A stretch of 63,859 nucleotides of DNA, filler included, from Parasitella parasitica NRRL 2501 (lineage: Eukaryota; Fungi; Mucoromycota), in assembly GCA_025201805.1 (NCBI GenBank). It is 6 parts of 6 records of this genome, joined end to end, with 100 filler letters (N's around TTAATTAATTAA, not from the genome) between each part and the next. Parts side by side here need not be neighbours in the genome. Positions count along the whole stretch, not along the records: positions 33,215 to 63,859 come from MU619437.1; 5 more parts are not named here. One strand, 5' to 3'. Under the pieces are notes generated by a model that was not told the origin of the DNA, did no database searches, and saw nothing but the letters and a program-made list of their open reading frames with translations. This document shows positions 4,106 to 63,859 of the stretch, in pieces (within the stretch, counting starts at the first letter, position 1; each line of letters starts with the position of its first letter). The translations under genes and the position numbers were made by a program.

Positions 4106-5294
4106 CTAATGGCGGTGAGCAGGCGTGAGTTTGATATCGCCATCACCACCGTTTAGTAGGGCCTTGACCTTTTCTGTGTACATCCTCAAGCTATCGCCCA
4201 TGACAGTGATTTTGATTTGAACATCGTTGGTATTTTCCAAAGTATCTTCATTCTTGACGGGTGTAATAGTCCAGCGACCGAAAGCATGATTTACAATTGA
4301 CAGTTTACCATCATCCAAACGTACGAAACCCTTGATACGATAGATATCTTCTTTAGGCATAGACTTGAGGAATGCCTCAAATTGCTCAAGCGTCAATTTA
4401 TCATCATTGACAGATTGAAGGATTTGAATCAAATCAACCTCATTTTCTTGATGCTTGGGATCAAAAACAGATTCTTCCAAATGTTTATTCTTCCCATAGC
4501 CCACCTTAAAAAGCTGCGTATCCAGGCCGAATACAAGATCAGGAGAGACACCGGCTTTATCACATTTGACCTTAGGTGTGTCAGTATTCAAAACGTTGAT
4601 GTGATCAATCACATTATCCAATTGACGTTCGTCGACCAATTCGTGCTTGTTGAGTAAGATGACATCGGTATATTGCGCCTGCAACTTTGCTGTATAACTA
4701 GTATCTTCGTAGCCACTAAAGTTCTCGCAATCAACAACTGTAATGATAGAATCCAATGTAAACCCTTCATCTTCCATCTCACGAATTTGCCAGGCAATAG
4801 GAGCTTCACAAAAGTTCACAGATGTTAGATGATATTATCATCTAGTCAAAAATTACACATACCGGGGAAAGCTGAACCACTGGTCTCAATAATAATTCTA
4901 TCAGGATTATATTGGTCTATAGATGATGTGATTATATGAAAAAGTATATCCATCTTGCTTCACACAAAAATTTACCTCTTAATTCTTGAAGTGCCAACTT
5001 CATTTGACCAACCAGTACACAACACATGCAACCATTAACCATTTCCTGAACACCAACATTGGTCTCCTTTGCCAACTGACTGTCAACTATCAAAATAATA
5101 AGGGTATTGGTAGCCATAAAAACCTATGAAGATCAGAAATTTCTACCTGCAATATCGCCAAATTCATTTTTCAACAAACAGACTTTATAATCTTTGGGGA
5201 CACGTTGTAATAAGCTCAGGATTTGAGTGGTTTTACCACTTCCCAAGAAACCCGTAAAGACAGTGATAGGAAGAGGGTTTACAACAGCAGGCAT
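4106..5294 (-). CDS. COG0523/CobW-family G3E GTPase (zinc metallochaperone, Zng1-like), multi-exon
   Basis: Starts MPAVVNPLPITVFTGFLGSGKTT; NEFGD; GCMCC metal motif; IIIETSG; LLNK; CobW_C-like RIKGFV. GT-AG introns. Confidence 0.9.
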
Positions 5295-5413: not shown

Positions 5414-7807
5414 TTAAAGTTTTTGCTGCTTTTCTTCTAATGTTAACTGGTTTAATGTCTCAATATCACCTTCCCTCAGCAATTCTTCTTCTCTTGAGGC
5501 ATCATCTCCCTTTTTACGAAGCGCAGGAAACTCTTTTCTAGGCAAAAGAATTCGATTCTCCTCTTCATCATCTTCATTTTCGCCATTGAAATACTCGTTT
5601 ACCAAGCTTCTGATACGAGGGCTTGCAGGCGCAGACAATGGCTTCGGAATTTTCTTTACAGCAATGTCCAAATCCAACTGATCGTCGTCATCCACAAATG
5701 ACTCTGGGTATACACGACGTAATGCCAGTTGACGAGCTTTAATGTATTCATAACCCATTCGTTTCCAGTCTAAAAGATCAGATAGTCTTTCAGTACGATT
5801 GCGCTGATTGATACGTTGGCGCCTTGTCTTTTGACAGAATCTAAACATTTGCTCACACAATTGCTGAATTGACTCCTCGACTGATTTGAGTCTTCGATCT
5901 ACTATATAGATACCATAATCTTCGCAATTTTCGATATTTTCGTCCATGAAACAACCAAAACCAGATAGGCTTATGAAGAAGCATCAGTATGACCTCGCTG
6001 ACTACAAATAAATTTTAAACTTACTTTGTTGTAATTGACGGCACTCCCATTACAGTACATTCGGCAGGTGTATATCCCCAAGGCTCATAATAAGAAGGGA
6101 AGACGCCCAAATGGCAGCCCCGAACAAAATCCTCGTAATCTAGGCCCAATAGTGGGTTGTTGGCATTCAGGAATTCAGGATGGAAAATTGTCTTTACACG
6201 ATCTTCCGACTTGTTATATAGTTCCAAGCGTCTCAATTGATTGATAATTGGGTCAGCACCATCATCTACCATATTGTGAGTAACAATGGGCGGTAAGCTA
6301 TGATTTTTCAATGCGAATACTCGGCGTTTCAAGAGAACTTTATCCTCACTATGCAGGAATTCCGCAGGATCCAGCTCTTCTCCTTTTAGAGCGCTCTCAA
6401 ATATACGTTTGCCAATACGATCCTGAATCTCGTTGACGGTTTCTCGCAGTTGTTTTGTTACAGCTTGACCTTTAAGAGCTTCCACATTGAATGAACGAGT
6501 AGCGGCTGGCATGACTAAAAACACGACCACAGTTATGTTTGACTTGGCCGCTTTCAAACGATCATTCAAACCTAAAAATGAATTGTTTCATGTTGAGAGT
6601 ATTTTTCCTGTTACTTGCAGTGAGACACTTACGTCCGAGGGATTCCACAAACATGTCGACGCCTTTATTACGGAATTCATAACGGCCAGCAGTGAAAAAG
6701 TAAACTGTGTTGTTCAGGTCAAAATCATAATGGCCATAAAAGTGTCCTCTAACGAAATCATTGATCTTTTCTTTGTTCAAGGCATGCTTGTTTTGAAACT
6801 CGTGTACTGCTTGGAATTTTACAACATTCAAGCCATTTGGCAAAACCCCATCTATTAAAGTTATAGAATAAGACACACAAAGACACGCATACACACTTTC
6901 AATCGTCTTACCTGGCTTGCGCTTTAATAAATGTTCGCTCTCATATGCAGTGATATGGCTAACAGTGGTAAAAACATCGGCACAATGGGCTGCGCCCCGT
7001 TCAATACAATACCGATGATAAATACCACGCTTGCCAGCCTCATGATCGACATCAAAATCTCGGAGGTTGTTGTAAAAATCGACCGAACCAGCACATAAAT
7101 AACGACCCAAGAGAGTGGCATGAGTTGTAAAAATGGTAGTGACATCAATCTTGCGTTTTTTGACAAGAGGGATACCTACACCAGCCAACCATTCATGGAA
7201 ATGAGCAATAATGGCAGGGCTTGGGTCAGATTCAGTTGATTGAGCATTGTACTACTCTAGAACCGATAAGAACTCTCAATGTTTGAATGGATCACAACGA
7301 CATATACCTTGTCTGCAACTTGACCAAGAAACCAAGTAACTATATAACCAAACAGGATGGCCTCGTTTGTCTCCTGGTCATTAGGCGGACTAGGAATGCC
7401 TGCAACTTTCCAGAGATCACTTTTCCACTCATCCAGTTTATGGGTCATGCTGCCTGTATCAAACAGCAGTACATAGGGAGCACCTTCCACTAACCACCTG
7501 CCAAAGAGATACTTTACACCGTTGGCGGACATGGTAGCCAATGTTTCCCGGATAATCCCAGAAGGTGGCTCGAGAGCCTCTACTTCCATAGGAGCTGTCT
7601 TGTAAGACAGAGGACCGATTAAGCAATATCTGTCGCCAAATTCCCTGACAGTAACGGGAACTTTTGTCTTTATAACTGTGTAAATGCCACCAACTACGGG
7701 ATACACAGTTAGGTACGGCATCGACTAGAGTTAGAGTTACCTTTGTTAGCTACTTCCCAAGCAATCTCGAATAAAATCGGATTGTAGACGTCTCGTTGTT
7801 CTGGCAT
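5414..7807 (-). CDS. GSY: Glycogen synthase (GT3), multi-exon
   Basis: [10 protein letters not shown]|[47 protein letters not shown]. Confidence 0.97.
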
Positions 7808-38393: not shown

Positions 38394-41300
38394 TTAAGTG
38401 GATATAGCTGATACATCGTCATCTCCATCTTCAGCGATTTCCTCTAAAAATGGATGTTTCAACAGCTCATCTGCTGAAGGTCTCTCCTCGTGGTTTCTAT
38501 TTCAGAAGAAGTAATTAGTTTACCGAGTATTCAATGCATGGTTGATACATTACACTAGAAAAGTACGCCCTAAAAAGTTTTGGGCGTCTTCACTCAGATT
38601 GGAAGGGATATTTGGTGCAGTATAACATCCAATCTGTCGATTCAAAAATTTAATCAGCTTGCATTATCAAACCACCTAGTGAAAATTTACCTGAAATATA
38701 GCTTGCATCTGTGAGTATTCTGGAAAGGGGTGATCTCCGGTAAGCATCTCCACCACCATACATCCCAAAGACCAAATATCCGCCTTTCTTGTATAGTGCG
38801 TCTGTTTTACCACCTCAGGCGCCATCCAATAAATAGATCCCTGCAAGCTTGGCCGATGAGCAGCAGAAGTACTTTGTCCTTGCAACATGATATCTTCCTC
38901 TATTTTCTTGGAAATGCCAAAATCTGTGATTTTGACGCCTCCTTTATTATCAACCAACACATTAGCGCCCTTTATGTCTCGATGCACGATATCTTTGTTG
39001 TGCAAATAGTTTAATCCCTTCAGTATTTGGCGAACAAAGCTCTTGACTAGTGGCTCTTGGAATGCACCATAACTTGAAAGTAGACCAGCTACGGAACCGC
39101 CTGGTACATACTCCAAAAAGATGCTAAAATAGGAATCATCCTCTTTGGAGCCCAAATATTGCACGATATTGTCGTGCTCTAATTCACGCAAAAGCTCAAT
39201 TTCCCTATGAAGAGCCTTGACCATTGACTTTTTTCGTTCTTCCGTAGCAGAGTTCTCAACAGGTAGTTCAACCTGCTTGACCGCCATCAATTCACCACTG
39301 ATCGGATTAAGACCCAAATACACATCGCCAAAGGTACCCCGACCAATTAGCGATCCTTTCATCCAGTTTTCGGGTAACAATTTTGATTTGGTCGCGGAGG
39401 TAGGTGTCGTTACAATTTCTTTGATGGCAGGAATAGCTTTTTTTTTTTTTTTTTTTTTTTTTTNNNNNNNNNNTTTTCAAGGAGGCGTGAGCAAAACAAA
39501 CTTGCAAGTACTAGAAATGCTATGGAACTTACTGCTTTCATCTAGCTTGAGAGACTTTAGCTCATTTAGATAATTTAGACTCGAACTTCTCTTTTGATTT
39601 GCTTTCTGCTGCTGCTCTAAAACATCTTTGATAGCACTTTTTTGAGGAGAGGCTGTTGGATGCACACTCAATTCTTCAGTTTGAGGCTGAGGGGTATCGT
39701 TTTGTAGACTTTTTGTTTCTGCTGTTGATTCTTCATGGTCACTTGATATACAGCTTCCACTACTACTATTGCTGCTACTACTACTACTACTACTGGTGAT
39801 AATTTCTTCCTCGTTTTCCTCTTCTAAAAATTTGTCCAAATCTACACCCAGGACGGACACTAATTCAGGCAGAACACTATTTCGATAATTCCGAGGCTCT
39901 AATCGACTTAGCGCAGAATTCCGGCGAGTCATTGACAATCTTTGAGCTTTGATGCCAGCTGTTTCCAATACTTCGCGGTTGTGGTTGGGAAAAAATGATT
40001 GAAGATTAGACGAAATGATTTCAGAGGGTGGACGTTCTCCAAAAAAACGTCTGCGCCCTTGTCCCCGAGTACTGCCACTGTGGCTGCTAGTTGTATTTGA
40101 CCTTAATGATCCTACTTGGCTCGCACGATTTGAGTAGTATTCGGGACGGTTCAAGGTACTGGAACTAGTATTCCAATTGTTCTGCAAAGGCGATTGCGGC
40201 TTTTCGTCGTCTTTTCGAAATCCTCGTCGATTTGCATTGATTGTTCCTTTGCGCTTGAACTCTTCGTGTGTAGGGTACATGTGCCTCTTTCGTAAAATCA
40301 GCCTTTCTTTTTCAGGCCTATCTGCTGATCGACATATCTGAACCAGTTCCAAGTCTGACAAGGTACGCGCTTCGCCGTGTGTACTGGAGCCAACAAAGAT
40401 ACAATAGCTGTCTGCATTGCTTTCATCTATGCCAAATTTGTGTAGAACCTTGCCCATTATTTGCTTTGCTTCGTTGGCTGTATGCACATTGACAATACGC
40501 GTTTGTCCATCCTCGCCAAATACTTTTACACATGTTTGTTTTACTTTTTCCATCGACATAATACCTCCTTCTAATGAGTTTCGCTAATTGAACAACATAA
40601 ATAACCAAGATGAGGCTCCCCCCCTTCCTGATGATCTTACCTTTTGTAATGCTCTGGGACTAGGTGGAGCTTGTGAGTAAACATCTGAACTCGACTGTGG
40701 ACTTTGTAACGAATTCTGTTGAAGTTGCGGGAGATTCGAGATATTGGCATTGCTATTGTTATGAGCTCTTTGGGATCTTTTTGAGTCTGATCTTCCTAGG
40801 AATCTGGAAAACGAATTGGATCTATTTAGCAAGCTTTTTGCGCTTGTTTCTGTTGATTTAGACATCTTTGAGCTGGTGGTAGTCGGCGTCGATGCAAAGT
40901 TCTCAGGGATAACAAGCCCTTCCAGCTTGAAATCAATGTTACCAAAATTGTGTCTCTCTAAAGGTGTGTGCATCTAGAACAGAGTGTGAGATTTCCATGT
41001 CGTATTCAGTTATAATGTTGCTTTTTTTATTACTTTAGTAGGTGTCCTTGCTGCTAGAGAGGCGGCCAAGTAGCATTCTTGTCGTAGTGCCTTGATAGCA
41101 GCGGCAAGACGAACTCTTTCGCCAACGGTTTTTACATCCATCGCTTTGATTGCTTCATAGTCCAAGTCGAGTAGGACTGAGCCCGAGATTCTATGATCTT
41201 TAAAAAAGCTATTACATAAGTACGGCGTCTATCTTCAGACATGCAATGAAAACTGTACCTGTGAACTTTTGGCTGAAGTGTCCCAGGGCTTGGTTTGCAA

Positions 41301-41542: not shown

Positions 41543-43432
41543 TTATCTATTTGACGACGACGACGACAGATTCATGAAATCCTCGCCTACTTTACTGATT
41601 TGGCTCAAAAACGACCCGGAGTTGTGGACATTATTGCCGCCCAAAACTATGCGGACTCCAGGCGTTGCAGCGTTTAGCTGTGCAATGTATTTGGCTTCCT
41701 CAAATGTTGTACCGCCGCAGATAAACACGATGATGTCTTGTGGCCTTTCACGCAACATGGAATTATCATTGGATACAAAGGGGTAGTCTGTGTCTTTGAG
41801 ACGAGCCTTGACAAGTAAATCGAGTGTCTCGCCAAGGTGAGGTGTGTGCTGCGTGTAGACATTCTCTACACCTTTCAGCCCCTTCAATGCGCTTTTACCT
41901 CGGGACAGAAATGATTGATTGGAGAAGAGATCGTCCTGTCTTTGTTGGTAGCCTGCGTAAAGCAATAAAGAAGGCACAAGCGCACTCTTTTTTTCGCTGA
42001 CGCCCGATCGATCCAGCATGTCAACAAGAGCTTTCACAGAATTGTTGGCCATTCTTTCGTATCTCAGGGCGTATAGCAGGACTAGGCGAACTTTGGAGTC
42101 TTGGTCGATTTGAGGGCTTTCTATTAAACGCTGGATAGTCTTGAGATTGCTGCTGTGGTTTTCGTTGCAGGCAAGCCCTTGCTCTAGTTCGCTGATCTCC
42201 AAAAGATGATCTTGTGCAACTCGTCTACTCAATTCGCTCACAAGCGCAACGTGTTTGGACACATTGCCAGACAGCTTTCTAAATTCAGGATATTCTTCTA
42301 CAAACCGCTTCATGTCAGCAATGGATTCAATGTTCATGTTGGATTTGGTCTTTGACTGATATTCGTCCACGTACTGTTTGATAGTAGCACCCAAGTCGCC
42401 CAGATTCAGGTACATGGACTTTTTGAAAAATGGGTCTTGGTCAGGGGACAAAACGATTTCCTTATCATACAACAAAACATGAGTCAAACGCCTCCAGGGC
42501 AGCACCAAGAAACCTTACCTTTAACTCGTTCTTTACTTCAGGCACATTTGTCATGTCAACTCTGCCGTGATGAATGCCAATGAGCTCATGAACCATAGCC
42601 TGATAAGTCCATTGTGTTAATAAAGGCGTAACCGGGTCATTTCTTCTGTCCAAAATCAACAAAATGGGTGGTGTATCAGGTCGTCTGAAATCAAACAGCT
42701 GCCCTTCAGACGTAATCGTATTCTGCACTTCCGTAGCCAGCTTTTTGGCCATTGCTGATTTTCCTTCGTAACGGATCACAGGCTTTTTCTTGAGGCTCAA
42801 TAAAACGGCACACACTCCTTTCACAGATTGTTCAAATGTATCAGCTTCCCAACTGTTGAAGCTGTTGCCAAAGAAATGGCGAGGGTCTTGGCCCAGAGAA
42901 AACAAGTCGGGGTTGATGGCCAAGTAATCTCCATAGTATTCTTGCACTTCTCGAATGACTTCATGTTCGTCGACTTCTGCAAGCTGTTCAATATCAGATT
43001 TTCGAATGATGCTGCTAAAATCTACATTTGTTATCAGCAGTCGTTGTTTGATATATGGCGCTTTTAAAAGACTTACACAAGTAATAGTCGCCGTAGGATG
43101 GCTCCCTGAGTTCAGCAATTAGATATTGGAGAGTTTCGCGCGTGGGTCTCAAGAAACAAATGCACTTTAAATGCTTCATTTTATCTCGGTTTCGGTTATC
43201 AATTCTATCAATCAAGTAACATTCTTTTGTCAGTAGCGTTGACTGCGTTGTTACTAAGGATATAATGGATGTCTAGATTTGTTTGTGAGTATCTCGCTTA
43301 CGAAAAACGCAAATAAGTAAATAAATAAATAAAAAGACTTACTGTATCTGTATCGAGTAATAAAGCCTTCATACCAGGCACGTCGTTGATCATTTTTTCT
43401 GCATAATGCTGAACTGCTTTTATAACATCCAT
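41543..43432 (-). CDS. VPS45: Sec1/Munc18-family protein Vps45, multi-exon
   Basis: MKALLLD, HLKCICFLRPT, DPVTPLLTQWTYQAMVHEL, VENVYTQHTP, GGTTFEEA. Confidence 0.93.
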
Positions 43433-44765: not shown

Positions 44766-46190
44766 ATGAAGGAATCATTGACATTCTCAAAAATATGGCG
44801 GTTGCTATTGAGTTTTTACTTGGCAGGATCACTATTTTATGCCACAATACATTTGCTCGGCTTCAGCTGGTTCCAAGAACCCCATTCACCTTCCAGCCCT
44901 CCCTTATTACCATCAACTGAACTTGGACCCGATCTATTGAGCGTCAATCAACTTCAGAAGAAATATCACTCGTTACAAACAGTGACATGGACAAATGCAG
45001 AAGGTACTGTATAGCAGCTTATTTTATAAGTGATGTGCCTGAATTTACCGATTTTTTATTTTTAAAATCACTCTACAAATAGGTGGTCAAAATCAATCAA
45101 TTTCCGAGGATTTGGTATTAAGTAAGGTGTTTTCGGATGCTATGGGGCCATCCAAAGTGATTCCGTACTATTTCAAAGCTACAGAATATTTTGATCAAGA
45201 GGATGTAACCATTTCCACCTTGGTTACACACAATCGATTTCCCGTCCTTAGCAGATTAGCAACCCGTTACAAAGGCCCTATTTCAGTCGCTATCCATGTC
45301 AATGACGATCATACAAAAGATGTCATTTTGCGAGATTTGCATACCATGTACAACGAGAACCCTGATATGGGCCGATACGTCGATATCCACTTGGTAGTGG
45401 ATAAATTTGACCGCCAATTCAACATGTGGAGAAACGTCGCCAAGTTTTTTGTTAGGACTGATTTCTTGATGATGCTTGATGTTGATTTCCATCTGTGCAC
45501 TGATTTTAGAGAGTCTTTGCGCAAAAATGAAGATTTAAGGGAGAAGCTTCGAAATGGCAAAGCTGCTATTGTTGTGCCTGCCTTTGAGTATATTTTAGAA
45601 GAGGATGGCGAGGATTGGAGATTGTTTCCAAAGGACAAGGAAGCATTGATGAATATTGTCCTGACTGAAAAAATCGACATGTTCCATCTGGGCTGGACTA
45701 GAGGCCATGGCTCCACAGATTACAAAAAGTGGTACAAATCATCAACCCACTATAAAGTTACCGATTACAACTATTCTTACGAACCTTACGTGATCTTCAA
45801 GAAGGAAGGTTCTCCCTGGTGCGATGAACGTTTTGTAGGATACGGTGCAAACAAGGCAGCATGCTTGTATGAGATTTATTTGGCTGGTATTGATTATTGG
45901 GTCCTTCCCAGCGATTTCTTGATTCATCAGACTCATCATTATCCTGAAGACACCAGGGCAAAAGAGGTATTCAGAGGCTTGAAATCTAGTGAAAGATGCA
46001 GTTATACTAAATCACCTTCTAGCGTAAATATAACAAAAAGCTGTATGATTATTTCAGAGAAGAAGTGTGTCTCCGTTATTCTCGCTTAATGATCTCTGCA
46101 GGCCTATGGGACACTGACGTTGCTGATAATTTAAAGAAGGAGTGTGCCAAAATCAAAGGCTTCCGCGAAATCGTCTCTCGTGTTCATTAG
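44766..46190 (+). CDS. GT49 (LARGE/B4GAT1-like) glycosyltransferase, type II membrane protein, two introns
   Basis: N-terminal TM anchor, MLDVDF DxD motif, YEPYVI, CDERFVGYGANKAAC. Confidence 0.88.
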
Positions 46191-47701: not shown

Positions 47702-47993
47702 GACAATATAACAGGCAGATTCTACATAGACATCAAGTTTTTTTTCGATGCACAGAAGCACTATCTGTACATCTACTTAATACGCATTTATATAGTAATC
47801 AGACCAAGGAGAGCCATACGATCAAGTCGTAGAGGTACACTTGAGTATAACAGCTGGGGCGCTACTCTATCATATACAGACATGTTATATAGTCAAGCTA
47901 TTACGCATCTGCAGAGCAAGCGAGCAGAGGAGAGCCATACGATCAAACTGTAAAGGTACACTCATACGTGCTATGTAAGCCTGTTATATTGCC
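47702..47993. mobile_element. Possible MITE
   Basis: 13-bp perfect inverted repeat CAATATAACAGGC/GCCTGTTATATTG at the ends; internal degenerate direct repeat with period 121. No TSD found. Confidence 0.45.
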
Positions 47994-51767: not shown

Positions 51768-56911
<5,144 letters not shown>

Positions 56912-58493: not shown

Positions 58494-59340
58494 NNNNNNN
58501 NNNNNNNNNNNNNNNNNNNNNNNNNNNNNNNNNNNNNNNNNNNNNNNNNNNNNNNNNNNNNNNNNNNNNNNNNNNNNNNNNNNNNNNNNNNNNNNNNNNN
58601 NNNNNNNNNNNNNNNNNNNNNNNNNNNNNNNNNNNNNNNNNNNNNNNNNNNNNNNNNNNNNNNNNNNNNNNNNNNNNNNNNNNNNNNNNNNNNNNNNNNN
58701 NNNNNNNNNNNNNNNNNNNNNNNNNNNNNNNNNNNNNNNNNNNNNNNNNNNNNNNNNNNNNNNNNNNNNNNNNNNNNNNNNNNNNNNNNNNNNNNNNNNN
58801 NNNNNNNNNNNNNNNNNNNNNNNNNNNNNNNNNNNNNNNNNNNNNNNNNNNNNNNNNNNNNNNNNNNNNNNNNNNNNNNNNNNNNNNNNNNNNNNNNNNN
58901 NNNNNNNNNNNNNNNNNNNNNNNNNNNNNNNNNNNNNNNNNNNNNNNNNNNNNNNNNNNNNNNNNNNNNNNNNNNNNNNNNNNNNNNNNNNNNNNNNNNN
59001 NNNNNNNNNNNNNNNNNNNNNNNNNNNNNNNNNNNNNNNNNNNNNNNNNNNNNNNNNNNNNNNNNNNNNNNNNNNNNNNNNNNNNNNNNNNNNNNNNNNN
59101 NNNNNNNNNNNNNNNNNNNNNNNNNNNNNNNNNNNNNNNNNNNNNNNNNNNNNNNNNNNNNNNNNNNNNNNNNNNNNNNNNNNNNNNNNNNNNNNNNNNN
59201 NNNNNNNNNNNNNNNNNNNNNNNNNNNNNNNNNNNNNNNNNNNNNNNNNNNNNNNNNNNNNNNNNNNNNNNNNNNNNNNNNNNNNNNNNNNNNNNNNNNN
59301 NNNNNNNNNNNNNNNNNNNNNNNNNNNNNNNNNNNNNNNN

Positions 59341-59704
59341 TGATGTGAATTACTGGCAGTCTTTCACACATCATATTGAATTAGTAAAGCAGATCTTAGT
59401 TCTTGACTAAGATCCTGAGAATAAAGCATTAATAATAAGAAGTATACCATTAATATTATACATTTAAAGACGATTGTACAACTTGTACTCCACATTAATC
59501 AAACACTGCTTACTGCTCTCCCATGAAGCTTAAATTAATCAAGATCAAGTTATTACATTAGTAACTTGAATTCACTATATTTTACTTTACTATAAATAAG
59601 ATGAAGTTCAAGGAGCTAACCAGAACTTCACTTACATTTTAACTTTAATAAACCAAGAAGAGTTATAATTGTATTTTTCTAAGCTTTTTTTAATTTTTAT
59701 AGCA
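59341..59704 (+). mobile_element. Probable 5' LTR of a second Ty3/gypsy element
   Basis: TG...TAGCA, TATAAATA 59591, AATAAA 59647, directly upstream of the Gag ATG. The partner LTR is outside the window, so boundaries are inferred. Confidence 0.65.
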
Positions 59705-59754
59705 TTTTTTACAATTAAACTACGTTATTTGGTTCTACTACTGGTAATATACAA

Positions 59755-62700
59755 ATGTCATCTCCTGAATCTGATCTCTCTTTGTTTGATGGCTCCTCTC
59801 CTACTGGTTCTGAAAAAACTAACGCTACTCCTAACCAATCTCACCATGAGGCACCTCAAACTCTGGATCAAATGAACATTACTGAAACTCAAGCTGATTT
59901 AGTTGCAACCGTTGAAGAGGACGTCAATATGACAGATGCTGAACCTACTGACGCCACATTACCTCTTGTAACTGGCACTACTTCGTCCCCTGTGAAAAGT
60001 AACAACAATCTCATTGACACCTTAAAGAAAATGGTCTATCGTCGCGATCAGTACTTGAACTTACTTTCTGATATGATCAATACGGATTCCAATGATCCTC
60101 AAGACATCAAGCATCTAGGCGAAATCAGGGACAAGGTGGATGATCTAAACAAAGGAATTCATGTCATGCGTAACTCGGTGCGTCTCTCGAAGGAAAAGGT
60201 GGTTAGTGAATCGGCTAAAGCGTTCTGCAAGGTACCTCTTGGGGGTGGAATTCGCTTAAACCGAAATGACCTGCCAAAGTTTCAACTCAAGACTAGTGTC
60301 AACAAGTACTTTCCTAAGGAAGACAACTTTGAATCGGTGAATCACTTCCTACGATCTTTTGAGAAGGTCGTATCCTCTAGTGGTGAAGAAATTGAACTAG
60401 TCTGGAAACGTTATATTCCACTTACTTTGCACTATGATCTGGATGGTTGGTTGAATAATGAGCTGCTACTTTGTAATTCCTGGGCTGATGTTGGTGCACT
60501 CTTCAATAAGAAATTTGGAAACAACGCTGTAATGAAACTTCAGTCAAGAAGACAAGTGTTTAATGCTACGATGAAAGTCGGTGAAACTACAGAAGATTAT
60601 ACGACTCGCTTCAACAAGGCAGTTGCTGAAGCCGGCTATGCTGAGGACAATGTCACTATTGGTGATGCATTCTTGATGGGGTTTCCAAGGGCTTGGCAAA
60701 CACAAATCAATACGTTGTTGCATTGCACGTATGTTGATCGGGATCATTGGAGTATCGAAGAAATTCACACCGCTGCTATCAACATCTTCGGTAACCAGAT
60801 GGCTACTATTTCATTTATAAACGCCAAAACTCGTCTCCCCAGTTCTGAAGGTGAAAATACTCCTGGTTCGTCAAAAAGGTTCAAAACAACTGAAAATAAA
60901 AGTTTCTACTGCTCCAACCATGGTGGTTCTGCTGCTCGACATAATGAAAAGGATTGCTCTCTTAACAATAAAGGATCCGCCAGTGTAAATCCTACTACTT
61001 CCTCATCATCTGCATCCTCATCTTATCAGCAACCAAAGTCAAAATTTCTGGGCAATAAGAATACACCTCGTGCTGCCACTGGTAACACCTTCTGTACTTG
61101 GTGTGGAAAGCTTTGGTCATATGGACATACTTGCCCTGAATATCATGAAAAAAATAATGGAAAAAACGTCCGCGTTCTTACCGTGCGAAGCACTACAAAA
61201 ACTAGAAACAGTAAAAAGGATAACAAGGGAAAAATGAAATCTGACGATGAAAATGAAAAAACGTTTCGTGAGAATATGGAAGACTCATATTGTGAGTATA
61301 CAAACAAACAAAAGGTTGACAACCATTTTAAACTAATCACTCCCTTACTTTTAAACAATGTTAGAGTTCTTGGAAAAGTTGATCCTGGTGCTGACATTTC
61401 ATTTATTAATAAATCAATTCTTAATAAAGATTTCAAAAACATAAAGAACATAAAAACCATGGGTTATTTAAACTTTCTTTCGATAAACGATGATGGAACT
61501 AATAGTCGCACCCAAAGAGTGGGACAAACCGAACCTATGGAAGTAGTTTACTTGAATGGAATTACTTTTAAACACAAATTTGAAATTGTTGAGTTTAATG
61601 ACATTATGAAAACTGACTTTGATGTATTACTTGGATCTGACATCTTACCTAAACTAAAAATTTATCTCAGTGGTGTTGCTCATACATGGCCTAATGATCC
61701 TGCTAAAGAAATATCTCAGTTCGAAAATATCAACTATGATATGAAAAATGAGTATGATCCGGAAAATGCTGACTATGGCACACCTAAAGAACGGAATGAA
61801 TTGATGAAATTGATTCAAAGCTCTCTTGATAAAAACATTGGTATAAAACCTGATGCTGTTTGCTCTATGAAAGAGAGCATTGTTCAAATTCCAATTGATG
61901 ATCCTTCTGATTGCTTTGTCAGACAATATCCACTTCCTGTTAATGCACATGAGGAGATAAAAACCCAATTAAAAGAATGGTTGAAAAATGGGATTGTAGA
62001 AAGAACTCAGCCCTCGTCTTTATATCATTCACCACTTCTATGTGTGCCTAAGAAAGATTTACATGGTAAACCCACGAAACTACGTATTTGTTGTGATCTT
62101 CGAAAAATCAATGCTGCCATATCAAAAAATTACCATGAAAACTATGCCGTACCTAAGATCAATGAGATTTTTGATCGAGTTTCAGCGAATGCTCGTATTA
62201 TATCTAAAATTGACTTAAGTCAGGCATACATGTCGTATTCTGTCCACTCAAGTTCAAGGGAATCCTTAACATTTAGTTATGATGGATCTTTCTACCGTTG
62301 GTCTAGAGCACCGTATGGATTAAAATTCATGACATCATTGTTTGTAAAATGCATGGCTATTTTGCTAAATGATATACATCTTGAATTAAAAGAAGAGATG
62401 CAAAGAGATGCTGGTCATCTTGAATTCAAGAAAATAAAAAAGATGCAGGAGGTAAAAACTACCGGCAATAATGATGATACATTTTATGGTGGTTTAGAAA
62501 GCTATGTGGACGATTTAGTCCTATATAGCAGAGACGTTAAATCTCATGTAAAATTGATCAATCTAGTCATTAATCGATTGACATCTGTTAATCTTCGTAT
62601 AAACGTGGACAAATGCACTTGGTTCAAAACTTCTGTATACTTGTTAGGATTTGTTGTTGGTCCTGGTATAACGAAAATCGATATGAGACGTTTGTCGAAT

Positions 62701-63859
62701 ATTGACAGTTGGCCCATCCCAAAAACAGCCAAACAAGTTAAAAGCATTATGGGAATTGTATCTCATCTGCGAAATTACTGCCCAATGCTTTCCAAGGTTG
62801 CTGCTCCTATTGACCAATTGAGAAATGATAAAGATGTAAAAACCAATTGGTCTCAACTTCACACAGATAGATTAAATACTATCAAGCAAATATTATTATC
62901 AAACCAAATACTTCATGCTCCTGTATTAAGAGATAAATTTTATCTACAGGTTGATGCTAGTCTTTACGGAATAGCAGCATGCTTGTATCAAAAGGACGAC
63001 CTAGAACGTATTAAACACATTGGATTTGTGAGCAAATCACTTAATCAGGCTGAAAGGAACTGGTCCACAAACCGTCGTGAAACTGTTGCAATTGTATTTG
63101 GCTTGCAAAAGTTCAGGTCGTTACTGTGGGGTCATCCGAACCTTGAAATTTTAACTGACCATATAGCATTAACCTATATGTTCACATCCACGAATTTAAA
63201 CAGTACATTGCAAAATTATCTGGAAATCCTAAGTGAATACAACTTCACAATTTCCCATGTAAAAGGAATAGATAACGTGCTTAGTGATGCATTGTCTCGA
63301 CTATATCCACCAATTGAGGAAGATCAAATTCTGGAAGAAGAAAACCAAAAACAAATCAAAAAACTTCAACGTTTTATACTCATGAAAAGAGCAAACAGTG
63401 ATGCTAAGATCGTTAGGGAAACAAAAATATACTCTCAAGATGAAAACCTCAATGTTCTAGCTATAAAACTTAGCGACAAAGAATTTAAATCGTCTGTCAC
63501 TGATTATGTATGTCCACCAGAAAGGGACAGATCTCAGATCATAAAAGATGCTCACGAAATTGGACATTTTGGTATTGAAAGTTGTGTTAAGCATATTCAC
63601 ACATATTACGGCTTACATTGGAACTCCATCTATAAAGATGTTAAAGAGTCTCTATTGTCTTGTCGTGAGTGTGCTTTGCACAACACTGCAAAAAAAGGTT
63701 TCAACCCTGCTCGTAGCGTCGTAAGTTTTGAAAGTATGGACTTCGTTGCAGTAGACTTGATCGGACCACTCCCTGTAACTGATAAAGGCAACATATTTAT
63801 TTTGGTCATGGTTGATCTCTGCACTCGTTATGTTATTACCCGTGCCATTCCAAATAAAT
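59755..63859 (+). CDS. Ty3/gypsy Gag-Pol polyprotein, uninterrupted ORF running off the window (absent from the ORF track)
   Basis: Hand translation from ATG 59755: MSSPESD...CTWCGKLWSYGHTC, protease VDPGADIS, RT CDLRKIN/IDLSQAY/PYG/YVDD, RNase H QVDAS/TDH/DALSR, integrase HEIGH..CREC..VDLIGPLP. Confidence 0.93.
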   Translation, partial: MSSPESDLSLFDGSSPTGSEKTNATPNQSHHEAPQTLDQMNITETQADLVATVEEDVNMTDAEPTDATLPLVTGTTSSPVKSNNNLIDTLKKMVYRRDQYLNLLSDMINTDSNDPQDIKHLGEIRDKVDDLNKGIHVMRNSVRLSKEKVVSESAKAFCKVPLGGGIRLNRNDLPKFQLKTSVNKYFPKEDNFESVNHFLRSFEKVVSSSGEEIELVWKRYIPLTLHYDLDGWLNNELLLCNSWADVGALFNKKFGNNAVMKLQSRRQVFNATMKVGETTEDYTTRFNKAVAEAGYAEDNVTIGDAFLMGFPRAWQTQINTLLHCTYVDRDHWSIEEIHTAAINIFGNQMATISFINAKTRLPSSEGENTPGSSKRFKTTENKSFYCSNHGGSAARHNEKDCSLNNKGSASVNPTTSSSSASSSYQQPKSKFLGNKNTPRAATGNTFCTWCGKLWSYGHTCPEYHEKNNGKNVRVLTVRSTTKTRNSKKDNKGKMKSDDENEKTFRENMEDSYCEYTNKQKVDNHFKLITPLLLNNVRVLGKVDPGADISFINKSILNKDFKNIKNIKTMGYLNFLSINDDGTNSRTQRVGQTEPMEVVYLNGITFKHKFEIVEFNDIMKTDFDVLLGSDILPKLKIYLSGVAHTWPNDPAKEISQFENINYDMKNEYDPENADYGTPKERNELMKLIQSSLDKNIGIKPDAVCSMKESIVQIPIDDPSDCFVRQYPLPVNAHEEIKTQLKEWLKNGIVERTQPSSLYHSPLLCVPKKDLHGKPTKLRICCDLRKINAAISKNYHENYAVPKINEIFDRVSANARIISKIDLSQAYMSYSVHSSSRESLTFSYDGSFYRWSRAPYGLKFMTSLFVKCMAILLNDIHLELKEEMQRDAGHLEFKKIKKMQEVKTTGNNDDTFYGGLESYVDDLVLYSRDVKSHVKLINLVINRLTSVNLRINVDKCTWFKTSVYLLGFVVGPGITKIDMRRLSNIDSWPIPKTAKQVKSIMGIVSHLRNYCPMLSKVAAPIDQLRNDKDVKTNWSQLHTDRLNTIKQILLSNQILHAPVLRDKFYLQVDASLYGIAACLYQKDDLERIKHIGFVSKSLNQAERNWSTNRRETVAIVFGLQKFRSLLWGHPNLEILTDHIALTYMFTSTNLNSTLQNYLEILSEYNFTISHVKGIDNVLSDALSRLYPPIEEDQILEEENQKQIKKLQRFILMKRANSDAKIVRETKIYSQDENLNVLAIKLSDKEFKSSVTDYVCPPERDRSQIIKDAHEIGHFGIESCVKHIHTYYGLHWNSIYKDVKESLLSCRECALHNTAKKGFNPARSVVSFESMDFVAVDLIGPLPVTDKGNIFILVMVDLCTRYVITRAIPNK

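Follow-up and report, generated by a model that had tools for sequence, protein, structure and literature searches.

The window, by which we mean the whole 63,859-nt stretch of DNA that was analysed, has a usable piece at positions 33215-63859, interrupted by N gaps at 39464-39473 (10 N) and 58494-59340 (847 N). The host genes in this piece are ordinary: they encode a protein with a Byr2-type Ras-binding domain, a member of the Sec1 family, a family 49 glycosyltransferase and a two-domain ABC transporter, and the corresponding ORFs, at 39477-40559 (-), 41543-42508 (-), 45112-46089 (+) and 53522-56638 (+), are fragments of intron-containing genes. A 64-nt direct repeat of 75% identity (47778-47841 and 47899-47962, spacing 121 nt) is intergenic or intronic. 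We found no tRNA genes or Rfam families in the window piece. Beside the host genes lies a single-ORF Ty3/gypsy element of Mucorales, consisting of a 5′ LTR followed by an ORF that is truncated by the window edge. The 847-N gap adjoins the first base of this LTR, the sequence restarting at 59341 with TGATGTGAATTACTGG, and probably reflects a break in the assembly at the edge of a repeat. A search for further copies of the element inside the window found none.

A single open frame runs from 59719 to the end of the window, with its earliest ATG at 59756. The resulting gag-PR-RT-RNase H-integrase ORF (59756-63858, + strand; 1368 aa from the ATG) matches, in order, the Pfam models Retrotrans_gag (weakly), RVT_1, two RT_RNaseH models and Integrase_H2C2, which is the domain order of Ty3/gypsy elements; the Pfam search gave no match for a protease in the window ORF. 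The top match among solved structures is Ty3 Gag-Pol (E=3e-44). Protein searches returned relatives of ~1700 aa from Mucor and other Mucorales, with identities of up to 77%, that add an integrase core and a chromodomain. PF00385 (Chromo) was detected in all full-length relatives at 50-77% identity, so that these can be assigned to the chromoviruses by domain content; the window copy ends before the integrase core and is apparently intact as far as the window reaches. On the basis of the open frame, the Pfam domains, the match to Ty3 Gag-Pol and the Mucorales relatives, we conclude that this is a single-ORF Ty3/gypsy element of a Mucor-like fungus. The initial annotation had called it a gypsy-type LTR retrotransposon, which the Pfam domain order and the Ty3 match bear out.

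The 3′ LTR lies past the window end, and the ends of the window LTR were set using relatives fetched through their proteins. In one of these (L001, 74-77% identity), the 3′ LTR begins with TGATGTGAACTACTGG immediately 3′ of the polypurine tract GGCCGGGGAGCA, and the start of the window LTR, TGATGTGAA, matches this position. The L001 3′ LTR ends in GTAGCA followed by unrelated flanking sequence, and the 5′ end of L001 reads GTAGCA and then TTTTTTACAATTAA. An element of Mucor velutinosus (L002), representing a young family, has a 699-bp LTR pair that is 100% identical (TGTAATG...CACTGCA), a CTCTG target-site duplication and an internal part beginning with TTTTTTACAATATTC; in another relative (L006), the duplication is TATGT and the internal part begins with TTTTTTTCGATTA. 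Both elements have identical LTR pairs and polypurine tracts, and their 5-bp duplications put the LTR end exactly at CA, leaving a run of T's that follows as internal sequence. L005, unlike L006, has no matching target-site duplication. Lastly, one sequencing run (X1; contigs, probably DNA), the only run with the sequence, contains a second LTR copy that tracks the window to 59705 and diverges thereafter. Given the boundaries in L001, L002 and L006 and the divergence in X1, the 5′ LTR comprises 59341-59704 (+ strand, 364 bp, TGATGTG...TAGCA), with the TG...CA termini of Ty3/gypsy elements, and the T-run is internal. An LTR end at 59704 had been proposed before any relatives were compared, and it is supported by the L001 flank, the target-site duplications of L002 and L006 and the X1 divergence at 59705. 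The X1 copy lacks 62 nt (59575-59636), with AT in their place; the loss covers the TATA box and the initiator-like motif described below, making this copy a promoter-less variant. In this X1 contig, 59705 is followed by 59377 from the opposite strand, a junction suggestive of LTR fragments that are inverted or nested.

Within the LTR, all on the + strand, we identified a putative TATA box, TATAAATA (59591-59598); an initiator-like motif, CTTCACTT (59626-59633), with a putative transcription start at CA 59629-59630; and AATAAA (59647-59652), a putative polyadenylation signal that would lie inside R. The functions of the first two are proposed from similar motifs in relatives. CTTCA(C/G)T is present at the matching position in the window (59626-59633), L002, L003/4, L005, L011 and L134. 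Downstream of AATAAA is a segment, AGTT(A)TAATTGTA (59661-59673), whose 3′ end is the putative cleavage/poly(A) site; its last part, TAATTGTA (59666-59673), ends 21 nt past AATAAA and is followed by TTTTTC. The remaining 31 nt of the LTR (59674-59704), ending in TAGCA (59700-59704), are T-rich and are the putative U5, an assignment that depends on the inferred poly(A) site. Directly after the LTR end come a T6 run (59705-59710) and then ACAATTAAACT (59711-59721), which begins with ACAATTA (59711-59717), matches the reverse complement of 59661-59673 apart from one bulge, and would be the specific part of the primer-binding site. There is no TGG within 24 nt of the window LTR end; the earliest, at 59729-59731, is not conserved in relatives.

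The complementarity that is encoded in the DNA joins AGTT(A)TAATTGTA (59661-59673) to TACAATTAAACT (59710-59721) through 12 bp with one bulged A. AGTT (59661-64) pairs with AACT (59718-21) across the bulged A, and the templated A at 59673 is the partner of the sixth T of the run (59710). Five further pairs, reaching the last base of the LTR and bringing the total to 17 bp, could form only if A's followed 59673, but the DNA continues with T's there; there is no templated A-run for 59705-59709. The predicted energy of the duplex (RNAduplex) is -8.3 kcal/mol without a tail of A's and -13.4 kcal/mol with it, a gain of about -5 kcal/mol. The minimum free energy fold adds a helix of ~59651-59657 with 59728-59734, and weaker pairing may reach ~59731. 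Compared with shuffled versions of the 24-nt R-end, the pairing was significant for the window (p<0.001) and for all ten families described below (p<=0.05). These observations agree with most of what the initial annotation had described, namely the absence of a tRNA-type primer site after the LTR, the pairing of the post-LTR stretch with an LTR segment ending 21 nt after AATAAA, with each item at the position given there, and a T-run that no templated sequence can pair. Its complementarity stands but its lengths, 13 bp or 16 with one bulge, are slightly short, the pairing being 12 bp templated and 17 bp with five tail A's. We also considered pairing of the T-run with the AAUAAA region and rejected it: being 5′ of the segment, AAUAAA would be opposite the bases 3′ of the specific part and not opposite the T-run.

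We compared these features in ten families beyond that of the window (L001, L002, L003/L004, L005/L006, L007, L008-L010, L011, L011b, L132 and L134), whose proteins are 34-77% identical to that of the window element. L011b is a second element in L011, and for L001 the R region was taken from the 3′ LTR and the primer site from the 5′ end. L012 (Rhizopus) and L133 were left out of the pairing set, as contigs without an R region or primer site; L133 has a primer site only, CA followed by T6 and ACAATTAAAT. A common layout emerged: TATAAATA, 29-60 nt, AATAAA, 9-19 nt, a segment of 7-10 nt, a T-rich tract of 31-69 nt, CA, and then T6-7 followed by the reverse complement of the segment. The T6-7 adjoins the CA of the LTR in all 11 families. 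AATAAA is present in 10 of the 11, the exception being L011b, which has AATAAC at 24 nt and its nearest AATAAA 37 nt upstream; the segment ends 17-27 nt after AATAAA, mostly 21-23 nt. The TATA-like box is TATAAATA in 9 of 11 rows of the alignment and lies 63-89 nt upstream of the segment, mostly 73-78 nt (ten families measured). By eye, about 8 of 11 rows of the alignment table have an initiator-like YCA(C/G)W, located ~35-42 nt 3′ of the TATA box. The base that follows the segment in the LTR is T or C in the families, never A; hence, no templated sequence can pair with the T-run.

The segment and the primer site change together. The pairs of segment and primer site include TAATTGTA/TACAATTA, TATTGTA/TACAATA, TAATCGA/TCGATTA, TAATCTTA/TAAGATTA, TAACAGTA/TACTGTTA, TAACCGTA/TACGGTTA and GCTGATTC/GAATCAAGC. 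With the pairs aligned at a constant offset from the T-run, two or three types of Watson-Crick pair occurred at four of the eight positions, and cognate combinations matched at 7.7 of 8 positions, as against 5.6 for non-cognate combinations. In a permutation test, 5 in 100,000 permutations reached the observed total (p=5e-5), a value that is not a strict probability because the families are related. For 24-nt duplexes, the cognate partner was the best in 9 of 10 rows, with a mean of -10.8 kcal/mol vs -5.1 kcal/mol. L011 and L134 provide a double compensatory change: within the common context gaaggatttTAA--GTAttc, the segment has TT in one and CA in the other, and the primer site AA and TG, respectively. 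A compensatory change between the R end and the post-T sequence in relatives was among the checks suggested at the outset, and it is clearly present. From the covariation and the duplex energies, we conclude that pairing between the segment and the post-LTR sequence is under selection. In L011b (L011 6991-7160), a relic, TTATTGTATTTT, is kept inside the T-rich tract, and the primer site, T7 followed by GAATCAAGC, matches GCTGATTC 30 nt upstream; L011b may record a shift of the RNA end followed by rewriting of the primer site.

These comparisons bear on the simplest alternative, that the complementarity is a chance similarity in AT-rich DNA or a degenerate primer site for a tRNA or tRNA fragment. 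The region is indeed AT-rich, and the leader alone folds no better than shuffled sequences (z=-0.09). Against this stand the compensatory changes in ten further families and the shuffling result in every one of them. Moreover, the specific part varies between families and therefore cannot match one host tRNA. We regard this reading as effectively refuted and attach next to no probability to it. A tRNA primer site in particular was rejected because the site varies between families, following the LTR, and because no TGG follows the LTR. In tRNA-primed elements (Ty3, gypsy, retroviruses) and tRNA-half-primed elements (copia, Ty5), the primer site lies 0-2 nt after CA. The elements described here resemble them in the position of the primer site, in their LTRs, in the polypurine tract (for example, that of L001) and in the 5-bp target duplication, but no fixed host RNA is complementary to their site, which changes from family to family along with the element's own LTR.

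Priming by the element's own RNA, or at least pairing with it, is well supported at the primer site. Covariation proves pairing, not priming, and it could in principle reflect a structural or cyclisation element, with roles in 5′-3′ circularisation, dimerisation, packaging or masking of the 5′ poly(A) site, while another RNA serves as the primer. Long-range 5′-3′ interactions are reported to assist reverse transcription in Ty1 (CYC5/CYC3) and Ty3 (bipartite primer site). Nevertheless, we consider a purely structural role improbable: the paired stretch, which begins immediately 3′ of the LTR, occupies the exact position of a primer site; neither TGG nor any other motif is conserved between the LTR and the ATG in the compared families; and the leader is only ~30-80 nt long.

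Priming of LTR elements is, to our knowledge, established only for host tRNAs, whole or half, and for the Tf1-type 5′ self-primer. The mechanism that best fits the arrangement described above is one in which the element primes minus-strand synthesis from its own poly(A) junction, an interpretation to which we assign an even chance of being correct. The primer-binding site would have two parts: T6-7 from the first base after the LTR, and then 7-12 nt complementary to the last bases of R, which are the stretch between AAUAAA and the presumed cleavage site. Element RNA would be cut and polyadenylated right after ...UAAUUGU(A), and the R-end with ~5-7 tail A's would then anneal to U6-ACAAUUA(AACU), either on that RNA or on one packaged with it; a short R-poly(A) transcript from the 5′ LTR could also take this role. 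The part of the tail extending beyond the duplex would be trimmed off, in analogy to RNase H cleavage in Tf1. Reverse transcriptase would extend the last paired A through U5 and R, so that minus-strand DNA would begin exactly at the terminal CA of the LTR. Following strand transfer to a 3′ R, plus-strand strong-stop synthesis would copy the primer back, regenerating the T-run and the specific part in each cycle. Copying back of the primer would make the primer site follow changes in the R end, and would explain the tight covariation of segment and primer site. For the clade as a whole, it is about equally balanced whether these Mucorales chromoviruses do start minus-strand DNA in this way, from the R end plus 5-7 non-templated A's on a two-part primer site that is re-copied each cycle.

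Several features favour priming from the poly(A) junction. The T-run faces whatever follows the segment, and an added tail is the only A-run available that would let the helix reach the LTR boundary. With the tail, the last paired base of the primer faces the first base after the LTR, which is the canonical position of a primer site. The segment ends 17-27 nt after the only conserved AATAAA and is followed by the T-rich tract; a position ~20 nt after AATAAA and before a T-rich tract is the usual geometry of a cleavage site. From this geometry and the initiator-like motif we infer the positions of the poly(A) site and the transcription start: if transcription starts at CA 59629-30, R would be ~44 nt long and the segment would be its 3′ end, ~36 nt from the RNA start. 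Because R is present at both ends of the RNA, covariation does not by itself identify the copy of the segment that pairs; the features listed here suggest that the 3′ copy does so and that it would prime after trimming. Trimming of a long tail to 5-7 A's by some activity is only assumed, and L011b, with AATAAC rather than AATAAA at 24 nt, does not conform to the proposed signal. Searches for R-end-plus-A junctions gave at least 119 matches to R-end + A9 in metagenome contigs, all in unrelated AT-rich contexts, and 0 and 2 chance matches for two patterns in viral contigs. These negative results are weak evidence, since the metagenome and viral collections may contain no such transcripts.

The copy of the segment at the 5′ end offers a second route, in which priming would follow Tf1 more closely. 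The segment in the 5′ R would fold back onto 59711-59721, RNase H would cut 3′ of the segment, and the 5′ fragment would serve as the primer, the T-run being a spacer or loop of 5-7 nt that is copied and then trimmed by integrase. [quoted passage not shown] Pairing of the 5′ segment with the specific part in cis is, in addition, the predicted fold of the leader, which counts against priming from the poly(A) junction, and covariation fits this route equally well. The TATA-to-segment distance is also fairly constant, as noted above, so that a start site and a poly(A) site cannot be told apart by spacing alone. Approximately half of Tf1 cDNA keeps a 3′ primer-site extension (PMC11042837), suggesting that bases past CA may be tolerated and that a T spacer need not be harmful. 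On the other hand, this route leaves unexplained why the spacer consists of invariant T's in all 11 families, the LTRs of which cannot otherwise be aligned, and why the complementarity always stops exactly at the T-run. A cut after the segment would yield strong-stop DNA of the T-rich tract only, and a poly(A) site well beyond the segment, >30-40 nt from the single conserved AATAAA, would be required for strand transfer. The Tf1 primer comprises RNA bases 1-11, released by an RNase H cut between bases 11 and 12 (PMC7175516), whereas the initiator-like motif suggests an RNA start ~36 nt upstream of the segment. The second helix predicted here lies between the part of R 5′ of the segment and bases 3′ of the primer site, which is not the Tf1 'pretzel' (PMC10085805). 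We treat Tf1-like priming from the 5′ R as the main alternative, though a less likely one.

There are several likenesses to Tf1/sushi elements (Tf1, Tf2, Tj1, Tcn1 and others). They too are Ty3/gypsy elements with a chromodomain (present here in the full-length relatives), often a single ORF and no tRNA site; their post-LTR sequence is complementary to their own LTR transcript, as is that of the elements described here, where it co-varies in 10 families; and they have extra flanking helices. An RNase H-type cut at the duplex end would be needed here as well. Unlike in Tf1, the complementary stretch is located ~21 nt after AATAAA, probably ~36 nt inside R, the arrangement of flanking helices differs, and the primer site is extended by a T-run, with five to seven T's that have no templated partner in any family. 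The family shares the principle of self-priming with Tf1/sushi, but its primer site is not fully templated and its primer is probably not 5′-terminal either.

Two other chromoviruses have comparable post-LTR sequences. Skipper, a dictyostelid element, has no TGG and has a polypyrimidine stretch directly after its left LTR, for which Spaller et al. (2016) suspected a novel form of self-priming (PMC5006619). In Skipper, however, no complement to the left LTR was found, whereas the primer site here has a co-varying LTR-complementary part, and the Skipper tract contains a characteristic C, leading its authors to dismiss a simple poly(A) partner, whereas the run described here is pure T (PMC5006619). 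SM-Tcn1 of Selaginella, a Tcn1-like chromovirus, has a conserved thymine-rich stretch between the 5′ LTR and gag, and no site for a tRNA or for self-priming was identified in it, its authors leaving the mechanism open (Novikova et al. 2010; PMC2864245); by its description, it resembles the present elements in having a T-rich post-LTR stretch without a tRNA site (PMC2864245). By analogy, the tracts of Skipper and SM-Tcn1 hint at a possible broader occurrence of tail-assisted priming in chromoviruses, which, if true, could explain T-rich 'missing primer sites' in others. Our literature search found no description of an LTR element that primes from its poly(A) junction. An earlier proposal of a similar kind is possible: as cited in PMC7175516, Goodwin & Poulter (2001) are said to propose 'potentially novel priming' for Cryptococcus Tcn2-5.

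The mode of priming is a defining trait of retroelements. If minus-strand synthesis does start at the poly(A) junction, a primer drawn from the polyadenylated 3′ end would be a third priming solution for LTR elements, polyadenylation would be tied directly to replication, genomic RNAs would be circularised or paired at initiation, and the R end and the primer site would have a simple copy-back route for concerted evolution. Annotation tools based on tRNA sites are expected to miss the primer site of these elements; a usable signature is CA + T6-7 + the reverse complement of the sequence ~20 nt after AATAAA.

The contigs of the relatives contained several further features. Long homopolymer runs of A and/or T are present just after the polyprotein stop in several families, among them L001 (5180-5205; T9 A8), L007 (~5640-5670; A13 G T6) and L012 (~4845-4860). 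In L005, L006 and L011, which are JGI 3300066330 contigs, elements of the clade are clustered with fragments of other retroelements and with a DDE transposase, suggesting zones of nested insertion. Just upstream of the Mucor velutinosus element, L002 has three tandem copies of a ~137-nt unit (1365-1837).
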